Below are positions 4,284-48,500 of a stretch of 64,000 bases of DNA, piece after piece. Position 1 is the first letter of the stretch, and every line of letters starts with the position of its first letter. The translations under genes and the position numbers were made by a program. Source of the DNA: Guillardia theta CCMP2712 (taxonomy: Eukaryota; Protista; Cryptophyta); the NCBI RefSeq assembly GCF_000315625.1, contig NW_005434647.1, positions 687,998 to 751,997 of the forward strand. The letters are read 5' to 3'. The notes below the pieces were generated by a model that did no database searches, was not told the DNA's origin, and saw only the letters and a list, made by a program, of their open reading frames with translations.

Positions 4284-4383
4284 NNNNNNNNNNNNNNNNN
4301 NNNNNNNNNNNNNNNNNNNNNNNNNNNNNNNNNNNNNNNNNNNNNNNNNNNNNNNNNNNNNNNNNNNNNNNNNNNNNNNNNNN
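4284..4383. other. Assembly gap (100 N)
   Basis: Run of N. Confidence 1.
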
Positions 4384-9240: not shown

Positions 9241-9321
9241 TCAAGTTTCAGCTTATTCATCACTCAAGTCCACGTCCATAACACTCGTCGGCTTCGTCTT
9301 GTGTCCTCTCTCTCAGTCTCC

Positions 9322-9873
9322 TCAAGCCTGAGCTGATCCCCACACCACCTTGCCAAATTCTGGGCGAGTCTCGAGCTGCTCACGCACCCACTTGACAGCC
9401 ATGATGATGGAGTCCGGGACAGGGCGTGCGGTCATCGGAGCACTGCCGATGTCGAGGTAGCGCACGGAGCCATCCTCCTTGATGAAGAACCAAGCAGGCT
9501 CGCTGAACTTGTGCTTCTGCTCGATGTAGTTGGTCGGGTCGCTGATAAAGAGTCCCAGCTTCTGCATGGTCGAAGGCTCCAAGCCGTAGGCGACATCGAA
9601 GGAGATGCCGCAGTTAGCGACGGTCGTCTTGGCTTCGGGCTCCTTGTCTGCCGAGATCGCGATGACCTTGACGTTGATCTCCTCGAAGGACTTGAGAGCT
9701 GCTTGCAGGCTCTTGAGAGTGCCCTGGCAGAAGGGGCAGAAGTTTCCACGGTAGAACACGACGAGGGTCTCGGTGTTCTTGTAGGGGAAGGTGACCTCTC
9801 CTCCTCCGACCTTGGGGAGAGTCAGAGAGGGGAAGGCGCTGCCAGGAGCAAGGGAGGTACGTGTGGACGACAT
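9322..9873 (-). CDS. Peroxiredoxin-like (AhpC/TSA, PRX_like2-type) redoxin, copy A
   Basis: Intronless 183 aa; VVFYRGNFCPFC CxxC motif, VIAISAD, FSEPAWFFIKEDGSVRY. Confidence 0.9.
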   Translation of the reverse strand: MSSTRTSLAPGSAFPSLTLPKVGGGEVTFPYKNTETLVVFYRGNFCPFCQGTLKSLQAALKSFEEINVKVIAISADKEPEAKTTVANCGISFDVAYGLEPSTMQKLGLFISDPTNYIEQKHKFSEPAWFFIKEDGSVRYLDIGSAPMTARPVPDSIIMAVKWVREQLETRPEFGKVVWGSAQA

Positions 9874-10029
9874 GGCGGTGTGAGAATGACGTGGGTGCAG
9901 GACCGGTGTTTTGACTAGGGATTAAGGGGGTAGAGGGTTACCCGTACAGCCTGTCGTGCCGAGTCACGGGACAATCCCGGAAGGCCGCATGATCCACTGC
10001 TGTTCCTTAAAAAAAAGAGCTGTAAAGTG

Positions 10030-31530: not shown

Positions 31531-31816
31531 AACGGTTCAAGACCCCGACCTACATGCTCCTTGAAAGATAGCAGTAAAGAGACACCCTACCCCCTATATC
31601 CACTTCGAGGTTCCTTATAAACAGTAGGGTACAAAAGATAAGATGTTTAAAATTGTTTTATGCCGCAACCACTGTTGCTAATGAGATCACCCCCTACCCC
31701 ACAACTTCTGGATTGATGCACCGGTCCTTACAAGCCAGGTCGCAATGGTCATGTCCCTCCCCCCGATGCGGTTGATATAAAAGAAGGATAGGGAGGGGAC
31801 GTCGCAGCAAACAACC

Positions 31817-32368
31817 ATGCCATCCACCCACACCTCCCTTGCTCCTGGCAGCGCCTTCCCCTCCCTGACTCTCCCCAAGGTCGGAGGAGGAGAGGTCACC
31901 TTCCCCTACAAGAACACCGAGACCCTCGTCGTGTTCTACCGTGGAAACTTCTGCCCCTTCTGCCAGGGCACTCTCAAGAGCCTGCAAGCAGCCCTCAAGT
32001 CCTTCGAGGAGATCAACGTCAAGGTCATCGCGATCTCGGCAGACAAGGAGCCCGAAGCCAAGACGACCGTCGCTAACTGCGGCATCTCCTTCGATGTCGC
32101 CTACGGCTTGGAGCCTTCGACCATGCAGAAGCTGGGACTCTTCATCAGCGACCCGACCAACTACATCGAGCAGAAGCACAAGTTCAGCGAGCCTGCTTGG
32201 TTCTTCATCAAGGAGGATGGCTCCGTGCGCTACCTCGACATCGGCAGTGCTCCGATGACCGCACGCCCTGTCCCGGACTCCATCATCATGGCTGTCAAGT
32301 GGGTGCGTGAGCAGCTCAAGACTCGCCCAGAATTTGGCAAGGTGGTGTGGGGATCAGCTCAGGCTTGA
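31817..32368 (+). CDS. Peroxiredoxin-like (AhpC/TSA) redoxin, copy B
   Basis: Differs from copy A at 3 aa (S2P, R5H, one E->K near the C-terminus). Confidence 0.9.
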   Translation: MPSTHTSLAPGSAFPSLTLPKVGGGEVTFPYKNTETLVVFYRGNFCPFCQGTLKSLQAALKSFEEINVKVIAISADKEPEAKTTVANCGISFDVAYGLEPSTMQKLGLFISDPTNYIEQKHKFSEPAWFFIKEDGSVRYLDIGSAPMTARPVPDSIIMAVKWVREQLKTRPEFGKVVWGSAQA

Positions 32369-32547
32369 GAAGACTGAGAGAGAGGACACAAGACGAAGCC
32401 GACGAGTGTTATGGACGTAGACTTGAGTGATGAATAAACTGGAAACACTGACAAGCTTTCTCGTTCGTACCGTTCTCACGAATCCTAAGGTATCAGTGCT
32501 CGAGTCTGCAATTTTCACACGCGCATATCGCGTAACTCACAAGGCTA

Positions 32548-39988: not shown

Positions 39989-41204
39989 ATGATGATCACT
40001 CGTGCAGCATTCGTACTAGCTATCCTCGCTGTTGCCGGTGAGGGAATGGTCATATCACAGAAGGAGCAAGAAATGCCTGCGAAGGGTCTTATGCTCAGGG
40101 AGGGTTTCGTGCCTACACCGCTCTTCTCAAATACTTTCAAGGGAAAGGACAAGTTATTTTCATTGCCCAACAACAAGAAAGGACTGTCTGCACTGAAGTG
40201 TGGTTAGTTTGTTGTTTCTCATTTCCCAATTTCACATCTCATGATGGATACCTGCAGGGTTGTATGGGGACGACATTGCAACTAAGAAGGATGCCTTGTT
40301 CATTCCAGCCACTTCTAGACTGCACTGGAGGGAATACCGTTCTAGACTGATCAAGGTAGATTGTGTTGATTTGGAAGCGTTTGGATTGATAAGCTGTAGG
40401 CTGAGACGCCTTTTTGGATGAGACGGGCAAGTCTGCACACGGGGCTGTGGGCCCATGAGTTGTGGGACATCGAACAGGGATGCCTGATGATCGAGACGGG
40501 CAAGCCTTCGACCATGAGATCCGATGACTTTCAGCGCGCTTACGAAGGCCGGGTAGTCTTTGTACTGCACCACAGCCAGGAGCACGGAAGCTACGGGCTG
40601 ATTCTTAACAAGGCTACACCGTGCACCATAGGAGATTTCACTGAAAAGTTGCCTCACTTCGATGATAACACGATACACTACGGAGGGTAAGAGCTTTCAA
40701 TCTTCATTTGAAATGTTCTCACTCGTTGAATCTAGGGAGGGCCACAAGGCATTGCAAGGACAAGTTGCCAACCGAGAGTTGCACACTATCCACTCCTGCT
40801 CCGAAGTCGTAGGATCAGAAGAGATTATCGACGGGGTGTTCCTTGGCGCGGATCTTAGACATGCCAGCAAGCTCGTGGAGCAGAAGCGAGCCAAGGCAAG
40901 CCAGTTCAAATTCTTTTACAGCGCCACCCAATGGCAACCTGGACAGCTTCAGAGGGAGTTCAAGGAGGTTTGCTATTCCGATATCTGCTCTCCGATTCTG
41001 AACTTGTAAGTAGGGGCGATGGGTCGCTGCTGCATGCTCGAAGGAACTCATTTTGTATCCGAACTCGTACTGGGAAAAGCCGCTCTGGAAGATAGTGATG
41101 GAGGTATGGTGTGATAGACATGCTCTGGCTCCGTCTTAAAGCTGCTGCAGGTGATGGGAGGAAAGTTCAGCCTTATGTGCAGGGAGCTGTGTGATGACTT
41201 GTAG
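39989..41204 (+). CDS. DUF179/YqgE/AlgH (UPF0301) protein with signal peptide (possibly plastid-targeted); multi-exon
   Basis: WREYRSRLI, WAHEL..IEQGCLMI, GSYGLILNK, IHYGG, FKFFYSATQWQPGQLQRE, GRWVAAACS. Confidence 0.85.
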
Positions 41205-41359
41205 CGATGGGGCACCTCCTCGTGTAGTAATAGATGTATCTAAGTTGTTTTTCAGCCTCGTGTGAGGCAAACTTTCAGCCTCGGAGCCCTCCAACCGGGA
41301 CCGGCATGTTTTGCCAAGTTGTTTCATCGTTTTGTATTTCTAGTACAGCTTTAGTTTCA

Positions 41360-42560
41360 CTCAGTGTGATTCCATCATCCGAGCCATGACTCGAATGAAT
41401 CCGGGTCGCCCGGCGGGCTCCCGGAGTCGAGTCCGGCACTGAATCATTACCAGTGTTACAGCTCCGGTCCGGGTGGCAGGCCGACTCACTACTCTGACAC
41501 GACCGTGCCGGTAGCGGCCGGGCGTCGCGGCGGGCCGGGCGGCCCGGCGGGCCACTGCCGCTGGGCCGCGTACTACGGTACAGTCAGTCGGACGGTACGG
41601 CCCCCGCCGCCGCGTCACCGTGCGCAGTGGCTGAGTGCCGGCTTCCGGGAGCCTGCCAATGTGCCGGGGCCCGGACTGGACCGGCCGGGCCGAGCCTCCT
41701 CACACCGCCGCCGCGGCTGCCGCCTCGCCGGGGGGGGCCGGGGCCCGGCGGGCCGAGACCGGCCCGTTGTGACGGCTGCCGCCACCGTCGGTCGGCGGGT
41801 CACCCGCCGACCAGTGGACCGTCTTACTAAGTTAGCGCCGGGCCACCCCCCGCGGCAGCCCGGCCGCGGGCCGGGCTGGGCGGCGTGCAGCGCCGGGCCG
41901 CCAGTCCGAGGCTCAGGCTCTGAGCGCGGCTGTCCAACTTCGCGAACGCACAGGCTGGCCGCGGGTACTGCCAGCCACACTACGTGATCATACCGTCACA
42001 CGGGCGTGGCCCCCGCGGGCAGCCACGGTGACCGGCGGCGGCCGGCCCCGCCGCACTGACTCACGCCCGGCCCGTGTTAAACCGCCGGGGTCCCGGAGTC
42101 CGATCAAAGTTTCCGAGCCTCCCGGGGCCCGGCCGACTCGGTTCTGCGGACGGGAGGCTTCAAGAGTCAGCTGTCCGAGTGCACGGTGCCCCGGTTCAAG
42201 CGGCCCCGGGCGGCCCCGGGCCCCGAACCGTTGAACCGTGCCCAGTGCAGTGCCGGGCACCGGCGGTCCCGAATCCGATGCGGCCGCCCGGCCCGGCCCC
42301 GCTGAAGTGACCAGGGACTCCGAGAGGCTCTACTAGGCTATGTCCGACGGTCGACTCGGTGATCGCGGCAGATGACTCAGTCCACCGCACTGAGCTGCCG
42401 GGACCGTCACAGGCTGCTGCCTGAGTGCGGCTCATCGTCTCAGTGCTTCTCATACTTGGCAGTGTGAAAGGGCCTCGCCGCAGTGCTCAGTCAGGTTGTC
42501 AGTTCGGATACTACGGTACCCGGCGTGAACGGTCGACCGGCCCACCGTCCGAGGCGCTAT
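41360..42560. other. Large GC-rich intergenic island; right part is the outer left arm of the palindrome
   Basis: Extreme GC, cgg/ccg-rich, alignable in patches to 44870-45206. Confidence 0.75.
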
Positions 42561-42928
42561 TGGTTTTACTTAGTAACGACCACTCTATTCGTGCCAAGTT
42601 GTGCGATGGGCAGCAAACGAGTCCGTCAGCCTGAAGCAACACTGAGTACGGTAGCAGCATTGGGACTCCGGGACTCCGAGAACAAATAAGTTCATCGATG
42701 ATTCTACATTCGGCCCAAGTTCTTGTCAGCCAGATCATTCAATGACTCGGACTGACCTATTCTGATGTACAACAAATTTCCCAAATCCGGTCCACGGTGA
42801 CTCGTCACTCTCTTCTCACGCTTCTAAGCTCAACCACCACCATGCCTTCAAGATCGTCTGCTTGATCCTTGTAGATCACTGTCCCGTCATCTCTCCGCGT
42901 GTTTGCTCCGAGGTCATTGCTGATTCTT

Positions 42929-43372
42929 CTAGCTGCTCGCGTGCGCGATGGCCTCGTCCATCAACCTCTCCGTCTCAACGCACACACGCCCTCCTGTCCA
43001 GGTCCAGCACGTCGTGATCACGTCTTGTGCTCGAGGCGACGGGCATGAGCCCGGGTCTGCAAGGTGGGACGCGCAAAGAGGCTGCGAGTCACGGTCCGGC
43101 AAGGGAGTCCTCTTGTAAGGCCATCTGCGTATGCCCAGCCGTCTACACGCGTTCTTGAGCGCCGTGAGGGAGATGCCCTGTAGCAAGTAAGCCGAGAAAA
43201 CCCTCCAGGCAAGGAGGCTACACACCAGGCTGACGGCAGCATCAGTCTGCCGCATATCGAACAGGCTGAGCAGGCTGTCGGCAGTGATAGCGATCTTAGG
43301 CTTCTTGGTATGGAGGGAGAGCTGGGACCCTCTTCTGCGAGGGGAGACGAAATGGGGAGGGGAGGAGGTCAT
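42929..43372 (-). CDS. RWP-RK domain transcription factor, copy 1 (intron 43178-43225)
   Basis: ITADSLLSLFDMRQTDAAVSL|GISLTALKNACRRLGIRRWPYKR. Confidence 0.9.
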   Translation of the reverse strand: MTSSPPHFVSPRRRGSQLSLHTKKPKIAITADSLLSLFDMRQTDAAVSLVCSLLAWRVFSAYLLQGISLTALKNACRRLGIRRWPYKRTPLPDRDSQPLCASHLADPGSCPSPRAQDVITTCWTWTGGRVCVETERLMDEAIAHASS

Positions 43373-44066
43373 GGGAAGAGGGAGAGAAGGGAGAGACGTA
43401 CGAGAAGAGAGGATGAGACTACTTGCGGGAGAGGGAAGGGAGGAGAGGGCTGCGAGAGGGAGGAGGGGAAAGGAGTACGATGCGAGGAGTCAGGGGGATG
43501 GTGTAAGGGAGGAAGGGCAAATGCTCGGCGCCTGGACAGCAGCCACAGGGACAGGAAGTGGGGCGTCGGTTTGCAAGGAGTTTTCGTTATGCCTGTCGGA
43601 GTTCCGGTGTGGAGAGTAAAAGGGCCATAAGCGGAAACATGATACAAGGAAGCGAAAGGAGACGATTACAGCCTTCTGAAGCGCCGCGAATTCGATTTAT
43701 CAAGGAATGCGTCGAGTGAAGGTACCTCGCTCATGTCCATTGACTGAAAGTTAAGGGCGGCAGGAGGCAGGCAAACTTGGGGGATCTTTCCGTCTGCTGG
43801 GCCAAGGAAACGAAATCTTCTGTTTTCAAATCATCCGGGGTTGTCCGAATGTCGGGGTTAATGTTGATATCGGCCATGTTCGGGGAACTGACTTTTCTCG
43901 ACGTGCACGGTGCAAACCGTTGAGCTTTCCTTTTCCTGCTCTAGCCCTCTTATTCGTTGTCTTGATCTGTCCCCTCCTCCCTCTCGCAGCCCTCTCCTCC
44001 CTTCCCTCTCCCGCAAGTAGTCTCATCCTCTCTTCTCGTACGTCTCTCCCTTCTCTCCCTCTTCCC

Positions 44067-44510
44067 ATGACCTCCTCCCCTCCCCATTTCGTCTCCCCTC
44101 GCAGAAGAGGGTCCCAGCTCTCCCTCCATACCAAGAAGCCTAAGATCGCTATCACTGCCGACAGCCTGCTCAGCCTGTTCGATATGCGGCAGACTGATGC
44201 TGCCGTCAGCCTGGTGTGTAGCCTCCTTGCCTGGAGGGTTTTCTCGGCTGACTTGCTACAGGGCATCTCCCTCACGGCGCTCAAGAACGCGTGTAGACGG
44301 CTGGGCATACGCAGATGGCCTTACAAGAGGACGCCCTTGCCGGACCGTGACTCGCAGCCTCTTTGCGCGTCCCACCTTGCAGACCCGGGCTCATGCCCGT
44401 CGCCTCGAGCACAAGACGTGATCACGACGTGCTGGACCTGGACAGGAGGGCGTGTGTGCGTTGAGACGGAGAGGTTGATGGACGAGGCCATCGCGCACGC
44501 GAGCAGCTAG
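44067..44510 (+). CDS. RWP-RK domain transcription factor, copy 2 (intron 44214-44261)
   Basis: Identical spliced protein to copy 1. Confidence 0.9.
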   Translation: MTSSPPHFVSPRRRGSQLSLHTKKPKIAITADSLLSLFDMRQTDAAVSLVCSLLAWRVFSADLLQGISLTALKNACRRLGIRRWPYKRTPLPDRDSQPLCASHLADPGSCPSPRAQDVITTCWTWTGGRVCVETERLMDEAIAHASS

Positions 44511-44929
44511 AAGAATCAGCAATGACCTCGGAGCAAACACGCGGAGAGATGACGGGACAGTGATCTACAAGGATCAAGCAGACGATCTTGAAGGCATGGT
44601 GGTGGTTGAGCTTAGAAGCGTGAGAAGAGAGTGACGAGTCACCGTGGACCGGATTTGGGAAATTTGTTGTACATCAGAATAGGTCAGTCCGAGTCATTGA
44701 ATGATCTGGCTGACAAGAACTTGGGACGAATGTAGCCTAGAATCATCGATGAACTTATTTGTTCTCGGAGTCCCGGAGTCCCAATGCTGCTACCGTACTC
44801 AGTGTTGCTTCAGGCTGACTGACTCGCTTGCTTGTGTTATCATCAAGTTTCCCTGCCCATCGCACAACTTGGCACCAACTTAAGAGTGGTTGTTAAACCA
44901 ATAGAGTGCTCGTTCAAGTTAACTGACCA

Positions 44930-45350
44930 CCTGACTACTGCGGCGGGCCGCGGGCGAGGCCCTTTCACACTGCCAAGTCACGGTAGGCATGGCCGTAGTA
45001 TGAGAATAGAGGTATCGGTATCGGAACTGAGCACTGAGACGATTAACAACGGCTCAGCGGCTCGGCCCATCATGGCATCGGACTCTCAGTCTCGGATGAG
45101 TCAGCCTGTGACAACGGTCCGATGGCTCAGTGCGGCGGAACGGTCAGCCGCATCGGACCAGGTGCAACGGTGCAACGGCCCTGACTGTGACAGCTGAGCT
45201 GAAGCCAAGTTCGACGAAGTGCGGGGACCGTGGTCACCGGGGCGGTGCCAGCCCGGCGCTGAGCGGCCTGCCCGCGGCGACCGGCCCGGGGCCCGGCCGG
45301 CGGCGGCCCGGACCGTATCGGACTCGACGATGATGGGGCTCCGGATCCGA
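44930..45350. other. GC-rich intergenic island (outer right arm of the palindrome)
   Basis: Same vocabulary; AT-rich flank at 45350-45400. Confidence 0.7.
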
Positions 45351-45588
45351 AGTTCATAAAAAAGGAAACTGAAAGTTTGAGTTTGATTCAAAGTTTTGTT
45401 GAGAGGCGTGTATGAACAAGGGGCAGGAAGCGAAGGCGAGGCTGACAAGAAGCAAGAAGATAACAGAGCAGGGCAGGGAGAGAAGAGGATAGTCTATTCA
45501 AGAAGGTTGAGGCCTTTTCTTCCTTCCCTCTGTCCATTTCAAGCACCCGAAGCAAGTCCGACAAATCAGCTCTTGCCCTTGTCTCACC

Positions 45589-48500
45589 ATGGCTCCTTTC
45601 AAACAAATCAACGTTCACTTGAGCCCCGTGGCGCCGTACAGCAATGCTGAGGGAGGAGTGGCAGAGCGGTGTCGTGTGCTAGTGCGCTTTCGTCCTCTAC
45701 CGGACTCGAACCATGGAGATTCTCCCTTCATGATACGGGATGATGTTCGAGTGTCGGTGGCCACAAAAGATTCGAGCGCGAACGATCAGGCTACGTATCA
45801 GTTTGATCGGATATTCACACAAGATGCAACCCAAGAGGAGGTGTTTCATGTAGTCATGAAGGACTCTGTGGACTCAGTCTTGAATGGTAACTTGCATCTT
45901 TATCTACCGTCATGTGTTGAAACCGTTTTTGTTCTTTCAAGGGTTCAATGCAACCGTGCTGGCCTACGGGCAGTCAGGGGCTGGCAAGACACATACCATG
46001 TTTGGGACAGAGAAGAGTGATCAGGGGATCATCCCGCGATCTGTGAAGGAGATCTTCAGGAGAATCTCATGCCATGACTCCGGAAGCATGTTTGTGGTCA
46101 AGGTAGGAAGGAGGAGTGTGTTGTCAACAGAGGAGGGAGAAGTAAGCTAGGCATCAAGGGGGGAGGGAGGATGTAAGCTTGGTTTCAAGGGAGGAGGGAG
46201 GGGTTAAGTTCATGGTGGAGATGCAGATATCCAAGTGATGGCAGGGCATGCAGGCATCGATGCTGGAGATCTACATGGAGGAGATGAGAGACCTTCTGCG
46301 ACCGTCTGCCAGCAAGTCTGTTTGACCGTTGGCTCCTCTCCTTCATTGCTGAGCTCCTCTCAGACTAAAACTCCGCGAGTCTGTCTTCGACGGGGTGTGG
46401 GTCGAGGGACTTCATTATACTTTCATCCATTCCGCTGAGGCACGACGACATGCTACTTGTTCCCTCCCTTGTGCAACTCCCCACGATCACCCTTCCTCCT
46501 CGTTCTGTTTCTTCCTCCCTGTCTTCTCCCTTCTGAAAGCGTTGACTCCTTTCTATGACCCCTGTCTTCTCCCTTCTGCCGTCTGTTCGCTTAAACTCTT
46601 CGTCTCAGGCTGCAATGGATCTGGTCAAGAAAGGAATGGCGGCGCGAGCAGTAGGAGTAACCAACATGAATAGTCACAGCAGCAGATCTCATTGCATCTT
46701 TTCTCTGCGTGTTGAGCAGCAGCATCCGGTCGTCCTCCGCTGGCCTTTCTCACTCTTTCTGCATCCATTTCCAAGAGCCTCCTGCCCTTCTTCCTTCTTC
46801 CTGTCCTTTCCATCCTCTCTTTTCCATCCTCCCTTACCTGTCTATCTTCTCCTTACTCCCTTTCTGCCTGAAGCTACGTCTACGTCTCTTATTTGCCAGC
46901 AGGATGGTTACCTGCAACGAGGCGAGCTTCACTTTGCTGACCTTGCAGGGCTTGAGCGAGTTGATAGGACTGGTGCACAAGTATGAGGGAGGGGGAGGAG
47001 CGGGAGGAGATTTCTGAGAATGGGTTTCCTTAGGGACAAACGTTCGAGGAGGCTAAGAGAATCAACTTGTACTGTATTGCCTTGTGTGCTTCTTTCTTCA
47101 CTCTTGTCATGACAGATCGCTCTCTGCCCTTGGCAACTGCATCGCTGCTCTGGCACAGCCCGGAAGGAATCACATTCCCTTTCGAGACTCTAAGCTCACC
47201 TTCCTCCTCAAGGTCTCAGCCCGCTGTTTACTCTTGATGCATACCATTCCTTCCCCTCCCCTCCCCTCCCCTCCCCTCCCCTCCCCTTCTCTCCCCTTCT
47301 CTCCTGTCTCACCTCTTCCCTTCGCTTCACCTCTATCTCCTCTCCTTTCTTTCCTCCCTCCCTCCTTTTGCTCTCTCTTCCCTCCTCTCCTCTTGTACTA
47401 GCTCAAGACGGTCCATAGAACTCTCTCGGAGGGAACGCCAAGACCACTCTCCTCATCGCCGCGTCCTCGAGCTGGAAGGTGTTTGGCCAGGCGGCGCGTC
47501 TACAACTGAGCCTTCCGCAGGACCTTGAGGAGAGCGTGACGGCACTCAAGTTTGGAGCTCGAGCACGCGCGATCAAGAACGTGGTGAAGGTGAACAGGAA
47601 GTTAAGGTGAGGCCCTGCCATGCTTGACTTTCACTCACTTCCCCTCCCCCCAGCGCCGAGGAGCTGGAACGCCTGCTCAACAAGCTGAAGCAGGAGCATG
47701 ACAACCTGCGGCAGTACTGCCTTGCGCTGGAGCAGAGGATCGTTGAGTTGACCAAGGGGAGGAGGAAGTCGTCTCCGAAAGAGGACAAGGAGAACTTCAA
47801 CAGCAACGTCACCCCTGACGCGCACAGGAGGGGCAGGACGAGCTTGTTGGAGGAGGAGGAAGATAACCCAACATTCTCTGCTGTCTGCAACCGATGGAGG
47901 AGAATGCAAGCGGGCGGGGAGGACGAAGTTCCTTCACCTGTGCACAACCTCGACCCCCTCCAGCTCCTCCACCACATTTCTCAGCTCGAGAGCGCCAACG
48001 TTGACATGCAGATGGAGATCGAGTCGCTAATCATGAAGCAGCAGACCTCGTCCCCCACTACAGGTACATCCAACCACTTGACCCTCTCTCTTCATCCGCA
48101 CCATTTGACCATGTGTTCGTTCCTCTTCATCCACACCACATGTGTCTCCCTCTTCCTTCTCGCTTCGTCGCGCGCTCTTCCTCTCTCTCTTCCCTCTTCT
48201 TTCTCTCATTTGCCTCCACCGTCAGCTTCACTTGTCTCACTTGTAGCTGCAGTGGTTGGGACCTCCTTCTCCGGCGACAGGTCGCAGCAGATGTCACCTG
48301 GATGTGCGAGGGGGGAGCAGGCAAGTGCTGTGCAGTTCTGTAGCAGCTCTTTGCGGACTGAGCGTGTTGACTTGTAGTGGCAGGAAGGGCTCGGGCAGGG
48401 GCAGGAGACTGAGAGCGGAAAGGAGGCGGTAGACCAGCACCTTCAAACTTCTCTCCTCGACTTCGCCTGGAGTTTGGCACTTCCCAAGCAGGACACGTCT

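Follow-up and report, generated by a model that had tools for sequence, protein, structure and literature searches.

Short insertions and deletions exceed substitutions where an inverted RWP-RK gene duplication of Guillardia theta faces GC-rich islands

We describe a genuine and fairly recent inverted duplication that comprises an RWP-RK gene and its 3′ flank, in a 64,000-nucleotide (nt) stretch of the genome of Guillardia theta CCMP2712 (contig NW_005434647.1, positions 687,998 to 751,997 of the forward strand; hereafter the window, in whose positions all coordinates are given). The two arms are nearly identical over the gene and fray outward, towards islands rich in guanine and cytosine (GC), where they differ by short insertions and deletions (indels) more than by substitutions. 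The islands are themselves crowded with perfect palindromes that turn on a single base, here called odd palindromes (loop of 1 nt) to set them apart from even ones (loop of 0 nt). We consider it evenly balanced whether break repair after the duplication remodelled the island-facing flanks, mostly by insertion, and whether the same process writes the island palindromes through fold-back or hairpin intermediates. That some unusual local mutation process helps to build the GC islands is probable.

The inverted repeat had been described in a first-pass annotation made from the letters alone, and we recovered it in that form. Its core continues outward into a second near-identical stretch (42612-42706 and 44738-44832, 95 nt, 98%), beyond which the arms alternate between shared blocks and segments present in one arm only:

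42704-43472, strand not applicable: left core arm; its 769 nt are complementary at 99% to 43967-44735
43967-44735, strand not applicable: right core arm, pairing with 42704-43472
43473-43966: unique, non-island spacer of 494 nt (52% GC) that forms the divergent 5′ region of both RWP-RK genes
42612-42703: left second near-identical block, in the gene 3′ flank, 90 of 92 nt identical to 44741-44832, with a 5-nt indel between block and core
44741-44832: right second near-identical block, partner of 42612-42703
42434-42611: left frayed zone, homology secure; left-only segments of 4, 8 and 52 nt between shared blocks of 7-25 nt; identical in a contig of an independent DNA run (X1)
44833-45043: right frayed zone with secure homology; right-only segments of 22, 3, 11, 21 and 24 nt, and 16 nt where the left arm has 52 nt
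42167-42433: left outer zone; only anchors of 10-15 nt shared; left-only segments of 18, 96, 34 and 47 nt, GC-rich and dense in odd palindromes
45044-45197: right outer zone, carrying the matching anchors
42929-43372, minus strand: left RWP-RK gene, open reading frame (ORF) of 147 amino acids (aa), Pfam PF02042, E = 2e-11
44067-44510, plus strand: right RWP-RK gene, ORF of 147 aa, Pfam PF02042, E = 1.7e-11

The PF02042 score exceeds the curated cut-off, placing the genes in the RWP-RK family. Their proteins differ at one residue (Y/D), and these two are the only copies of the gene in the 87.1-Mb assembly. The pair stands head-to-head, the left gene reading leftwards and the right one rightwards, so that the outer arms are their 3′ flanks. 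No homology was detected between the two halves of the spacer (score 4.7 vs 2.9 ± 2.1 for shuffles).

Both arms and every arm-specific segment exist in the DNA of the organism. Contigs of X1, sequenced in 2021, cover 41300-42654 and 44790-46000 with zero differences and zero gaps relative to the reference, and a further X1 contig (43440-43999) crosses the spacer. Depth in this run is 126 over the collapsed core, about 70 over the flanks and 50 over the spacer. A second DNA data set, from 2011 (X2), agrees with both outer arms. Because independent contigs match the outer arms and core depth is doubled, the palindrome is not an assembly artefact; the arms thus hold up against other sequence data, and an error of assembly or consensus is so improbable that we give it no further weight. 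An RNA run contributed almost no reads over the locus, and an Rfam search of 40500-46500 matched no family. Elsewhere in the window, the reference has a 100-N assembly gap (4284-4383).

In the frayed zone with secure homology, indels exceed substitutions. Aligned with gaps, the outer arms score 104, compared with 2.6 ± 2.0 for shuffles, and the shared blocks of this zone are identical at 110 of 114 positions. Against four substitutions stand at least nine indels of 3-52 nt, counted as the right-only segments of 22, 3, 11, 21 and 24 nt, the left-only segments of 4 and 8 nt, the 52-vs-16-nt replacement and the 5-nt event further in. The pooled baseline from other duplicates is 476 substitutions to 35 indels, or about 13.6 substitutions per indel (Fisher P = 5e-8), which bears out the earlier statement that indels here rival or exceed substitutions. 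Four young retrotransposon families, a baseline of largely coding sequence, gave 447 substitutions and about 33 indels in about 75 kb compared, with only 13 indels of at least 3 nt. The ratio is 6:1 in the core of the palindrome itself and 11:1 in a second RWP-RK palindrome, and an inverted pair within the window (9249-9875 and 31815-32441) has 12 substitutions, no indels and sharp ends.

An alternative is that the duplication is old, that arm-to-arm gene conversion homogenised its core and that the flanks underwent ordinary neutral decay. Substitutions are indeed denser further out: the secure outer zone has 4 in 114 nt, and the core has 6 in 861 nt. At the baseline ratio, however, at least nine indels would be accompanied, within about 200 nt, by more than 100 substitutions, too many for the blocks to remain alignable at 96%. 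Given 13.6 substitutions per indel elsewhere and 4 to at least 9 here, neutral decay around a converted core is contradicted by the substitution-to-indel ratio, and we regard it as very improbable.

Several of the duplicates have features of their own. The inverted pair within the window is 627 nt long, 98% identical and 22 kb apart; one copy, although flanked by two GC islands, is unfrayed. The second RWP-RK palindrome, on contig C39 (about 70810-71389 and 73989-74570; 582 nt, 97.8%, about 2.6 kb apart), has arms that end sharply, with flanks at chance level, 11 substitutions and one gap; RWP-RK genes seem prone to palindromes in this genome. Retroelements on several contigs fall into four integrase-bearing families, young and probably active, in which copies share 97-99.8% identity and open frames reach about 2,100 aa; one family has long terminal repeats of about 635 nt. 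The sole retroelement locus with a GC island (L029) had no nucleotide relatives among the retroelement loci compared.

The outer-arm alignment reproduced, at the same coordinates, every insert that the first-pass annotation had listed; the outermost anchors are modestly supported. The arm-specific segments that were characterised individually are these:

44736-44740, right-only, 5 nt: makes the odd palindrome TAG-G-CTA; 3-nt terminal repeat
44833-44854, right-only, 22 nt: AT-rich, not island-like; equally readable as a deletion in the left arm
44946-44956, right-only, 11 nt: 100% GC, strongly island-like; 4-nt terminal repeat; 9-nt odd palindrome across the junction
44979-44999, right-only, 21 nt: unique in the genome; 3-nt terminal repeat; completes the island word TACTACGG with T of the shared flank
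45007-45030, right-only, 24 nt: unique in the genome; 6-nt tandem duplication inside
42566-42573, left-only, 8 nt: with the shared flank it makes the 11-nt odd palindrome TTACT-T-AGTAA
42505-42556, left-only, 52 nt (16 nt in the right arm): island-like; holds TACTACGGTAC and a 10-nt even palindrome
42285-42380, left-only, 96 nt: opposite 7 nt on the right (45140-45146), between the putative anchors TCCGATGCGGC and TCC[A/G]CCGCACTGAG

Homology beyond 42434 on the left and 45043 on the right is only modestly supported. The best match of 45103-45157 in the whole window is the expected mirrored site (32.5 vs 24 for the next-best, which is unrelated). Because the chain of the outer zone scores no better than against unrelated islands, the contrast between 96 and 7 nt is plausible rather than firmly established. 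The annotation had further proposed recurrent breaks at fixed sites: the localization to island-facing flanks is upheld, and since event positions differ between the arms, the hotspot is a zone and not a site.

Arm-specific segments tend to end in short copies of their flank, are unique where tested and lack a nearby template. In eight clean events the terminal copies measure 0-4 nt and sum to 14, against 5.9 ± 2.7 by chance (P = 0.009), in agreement with the earlier remark that inserts often end this way. The 21-nt and 24-nt inserts each have a single occurrence in 87 Mb when up to two mismatches are allowed, and a genome search with the left arm returned no match beyond the right arm, so that, as had been claimed, no single element accounts for the inserts. 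A short mobile element, such as a miniature inverted-repeat transposable element (MITE) or a GC cluster, was rejected, the tested inserts being single-copy. Templating from the flanks, which the annotation had offered as one source of the fill-in, found no backing: within ± 80 nt, the longest direct or inverted matches were no better than those of shuffled inserts in 16 of 17 segments. Some segments contain small tandem duplications with periods of 6-17 nt; a tandem-repeat search returned only trivial short repeats, and the islands showed no larger fold-back structure.

In composition, part of this sequence resembles the islands. A k-mer model trained on the window's other islands scored shared blocks at −0.1 to −0.3 and the arm-specific segments of the secure zone at a mean of +0.42; three of seven of these segments (52, 11 and 21 nt) were of island type, vs none of nine shared blocks, and those of 22, 16 and 24 nt looked ordinary. 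When both zones are pooled, the arm-specific sequence has a higher GC content (67% vs 56%) and contains 12 odd palindromes with arms of at least 4 nt, against 2.4 ± 1.5 expected, and one even palindrome against 2.4. Palindromes straddling the junctions of insert and flank are weakly enriched (15 vs 9.7, P = 0.04). Striking odd palindromes beyond those listed above are GCA-G-TGC and GCGG-C-CCGC. Together, these features are suggestive of a link between the indels of the frayed zone and a palindrome-writing process.

The GC islands carry a strong and specific excess of odd palindromes. Across all seven islands of the window, perfect palindromes with a loop of 1 nt and arms of at least 4 nt number 113 against 27.6 ± 4.9 expected (z = 17), and 49 against 7.4 when arms are at least 5 nt, which amounts to more than 100 within 4.5 kb of islands. 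Even palindromes show no enrichment (31 vs 25.5), and loops of 2-9 nt reach z = 1-5, these other spacings being enriched 1.5-2-fold. In 84% of odd palindromes the central base is G or C, and the central triplets are CCG, GCC, ACT, TCA and their complements; the ccgg/agt/act vocabulary noticed at first pass is therefore real and equals the centres of these palindromes. The island word TACTACGGTAC, readable as overlapping single-base-pivot palindromes (GTA-C-TAC and TAC-G-GTA), occurs 313 times in the genome, compared with 118 for the reversed control, and is often paired a few hundred bases apart. Full-text literature searches returned no description of such islands in cryptophytes, and no earlier account of the process surfaced there either, in line with the annotation's own statement. 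The two islands that the arms approach are:

41392-42166: left GC island proper, 70-81% GC, with a 23-nt perfect odd palindrome at 41790-41812
45198-45380: right GC island, upstream of the kinesin gene

The 23-nt palindrome, with 11-nt arms around a single C, is the longest of its kind in the islands of the window.

The left outer arm enters an island of about 1 kb and the right outer arm one of about 250 bp. On the left, the neighbouring gene is AlgH-like (40662-41009, plus strand), and the island, taken as 41392-42400, is flanked by the 3′ ends of this gene and of the minus-strand RWP-RK gene, an apparently convergent arrangement. On the right, the island lies just upstream of a kinesin gene whose start is near 45589 on the plus strand. 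No GC island occurs in the divergent promoter that separates the RWP-RK genes, and the inner ends of the arms (43341-43472 and 43967-44098), which form the 5′ regions of these genes, are long purine-rich tracts of the GGGAGAGG type. A contig from a freshwater metagenome (X6) matches the window at every base of 45751-46000 and has 18 substitutions and no gaps over 45563-45750; this divergent stretch adjoins the right island and may reflect either a variant strain or low quality at the end of the contig. The remaining X6 pieces are identical to the reference and do not polarise the events.

We propose that, after the duplication, a spatially confined break-and-repair process would have remodelled those parts of the arms that face GC islands, producing short indels and few base changes. 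Most events would have inserted new and unique sequence, 3 to about 50 nt at a time, with 1-4 nt of microhomology at the joints, and some would be microhomology-mediated deletions. The same process may write the hallmark of the islands, perfect inverted copies turning on a single base: a DNA end would gain a few untemplated nucleotides and then copy itself in reverse, by fold-back synthesis or by the opening of a hairpin-capped end, before being rejoined. Repeated near the same places, such events could make islands grow outward into ordinary flanking DNA. Whether this extends to an active, island-targeted palindrome-writing process in Guillardia theta, continually adding short GC-rich inverted copies with a single-base pivot to islands that flank genes, so that mutation rather than selection or transposons would build and spread these regulatory-looking regions, is a more tentative proposition that we think rather doubtful. 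Such a process would possibly be driven by a dedicated hairpin-forming nuclease or by an unusual mode of an end-joining polymerase. For the break-and-repair process at the island margins, an end-joining polymerase is somewhat more likely than a hairpin-forming nuclease.

Of the mechanism sketched in the first-pass annotation, the localized, indel-dominated process, the microhomology and the unique inserts survive, and the fixed sites, Top2 and an expanded set of Pol X or TdT enzymes do not. A filled-in 4-nt Top2 stagger predicts 4-nt duplications, and a 4-nt terminal repeat was seen in only one of eight clean events, so staggered Top2 cuts are not supported. Purely untemplated, TdT-like addition cannot make palindromes and is not supported. 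The genome has a single locus with a Pol X palm domain, and about five family-A polymerase loci, candidates for Pol theta or for organellar enzymes. Pol theta-like end joining, also named there, stays viable, with the reservation that its multi-nucleotide snap-back loop does not match a 1-nt pivot.

Several observations weigh against break repair by insertion and against a shared origin with the island palindromes. Each event could be a deletion in the opposite arm, and junction microhomology fits deletion equally well. The island-likeness contrast is not significant per segment (P = 0.13). In the secure zone alone, odd palindromes show no significant excess (6 vs 4.8 ± 2, P = 0.35); the palindrome-rich left-only segments fall in the outer zone and, because homology there is modestly supported, may simply be island sequence. 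The Pol theta snap-back loop measures about 6 nt in Drosophila, according to work cited in PMC11292364, and by that figure a 1-nt turn is not the preferred geometry. The hAT domains PF05699 and PF14372 had no genome match in a search that lacked a positive control. Polarised retrotransposon indels of at least 7 nt were all deletions.

Some of these points would follow from differential deletion, in which a longer, island-like 3′ flank was ancestral and the arms lost different pieces of it by microhomology-mediated deletion or slippage. Terminal repeats of 2-4 nt are the classic mark of such deletions, the retrotransposon indels point the same way, the ordinary, non-island look of the 22-, 16- and 24-nt segments fits, and so does the lack of significant palindrome enrichment in the secure zone. 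The deletion rate required is, however, roughly a hundred times the baseline per substitution, and deletion must preferentially have removed island-type, palindromic segments and spared all non-island blocks; some insertional process must in any case have written the palindromes. We treat differential deletion as a serious but unlikely account of the locus. The confinement of island-type and palindromic sequence to arm-specific segments counts for insertion, as do the small majority-polarised insertions in retrotransposon copies (ccgg, ctaagc and cct), which reflect their flank, and the most likely history is a mixture of events with a net insertion of island-type sequence.

In another reading, the inverted copies would have been made by a hairpin-forming nuclease or transposase of the hAT/Ac or V(D)J kind: island DNA would be cut again and again, and off-centre opening of the hairpin-capped ends would leave palindromic P-nucleotides around a single base, with untemplated GC-rich nucleotides added. 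Palindromes with a single central base have one well-documented source, the opening of hairpin-capped ends that hAT transposases make, as in Ac/Ds footprints (PMC5873905), and it is precisely this geometry that is strongly enriched here. MULEs also form hairpins in their flanks (PMC5499845), and MULE-like transposase fragments exist in the genome. Against this, searches for hAT and CACTA transposases in the genome were negative, neither having a positive control; about six MULE matches were weak; events are not surrounded by 8-9-nt target duplications, their terminal repeats being 0-4 nt; and the palindromes that straddle junctions are those with weak enrichment. We judge such footprints improbable. 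The MULE matches are six near-identical ones to the transposase domain (C25:383473-383637 and five other places), in open frames of 114-142 aa. Template switching or slippage during replication of hard-to-replicate, GC-rich DNA, with U-turns of the nascent strand, tandem duplications and no double-strand break, is the less probable still. Template-switch mutations create perfect inverted copies and clustered changes in one event (PMC5453318; Loytynoja and Goldman), tandem duplications of small period are present, and an interstrand switch needs no hairpin loop, which by our reasoning would allow a pivot of 0-1 nt. However, the insert bodies are not direct or inverted copies of sequence within ± 80 nt, and switching predicts even palindromes through self-complementary dinucleotides, the class that is not enriched.

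The components of the proposed process, microhomology joints and fold-back additions, are known as repair scars. Here, unusually, such scars are packed into a narrow zone, predominate over substitutions, pivot strictly on a single base and apparently have a role in island building. The palindrome provides a built-in before-and-after comparison with arms validated by independent sequencing; the locus is thus internally controlled evidence for an indel excess, and it does not by itself settle direction or mechanism. If the events are insertions, a normally rare type of break-repair scar would dominate the evolution and set the base composition of a whole class of intergenic regions, GC-rich promoter-proximal islands in a little-studied eukaryotic lineage would have a mutational origin, and the process would have a precise, testable signature in odd palindromes alone, with a 1-nt pivot.

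Mobile GC-rich palindromic clusters are known in yeast and algal organelle genomes. Organellar GC clusters (for algae, cf. PMC3162594 and PMC4524435) share with the present islands a GC-rich, palindromic, intergenic and spacer-inflating character, but they are families of repeated elements in organelle DNA, whereas the present islands are nuclear and each insert tested has a single occurrence in an 87-Mb genome. Template-switch mutations likewise share perfect inverted repeats, but they copy a nearby template, and none was found here for the insert bodies. The likeness to Ac/Ds footprints lies in perfect one-base-centred palindromes, with arms of up to about 20 nt, and in microhomology joints; the differences are that 8-bp target duplications are absent, that no hAT transposase was detected and that palindrome density is far above ordinary footprint loads. 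Pol theta alternates untemplated and snap-back synthesis and leaves unique inserts, internal complementarity and microhomology joints (PMC4912351). The present events resemble its end joining in their inserts, which are short and unique and combine random with self-complementary tracts, in 1-4-nt microhomology and in scars of 3-50 nt. They depart from it in having a single-base turn, where snap-back normally leaves a loop of several nucleotides, and no detectable flank templating, where flank-templated patches are common in Pol theta scars; in addition, they occur only at island margins and recur over evolutionary time.

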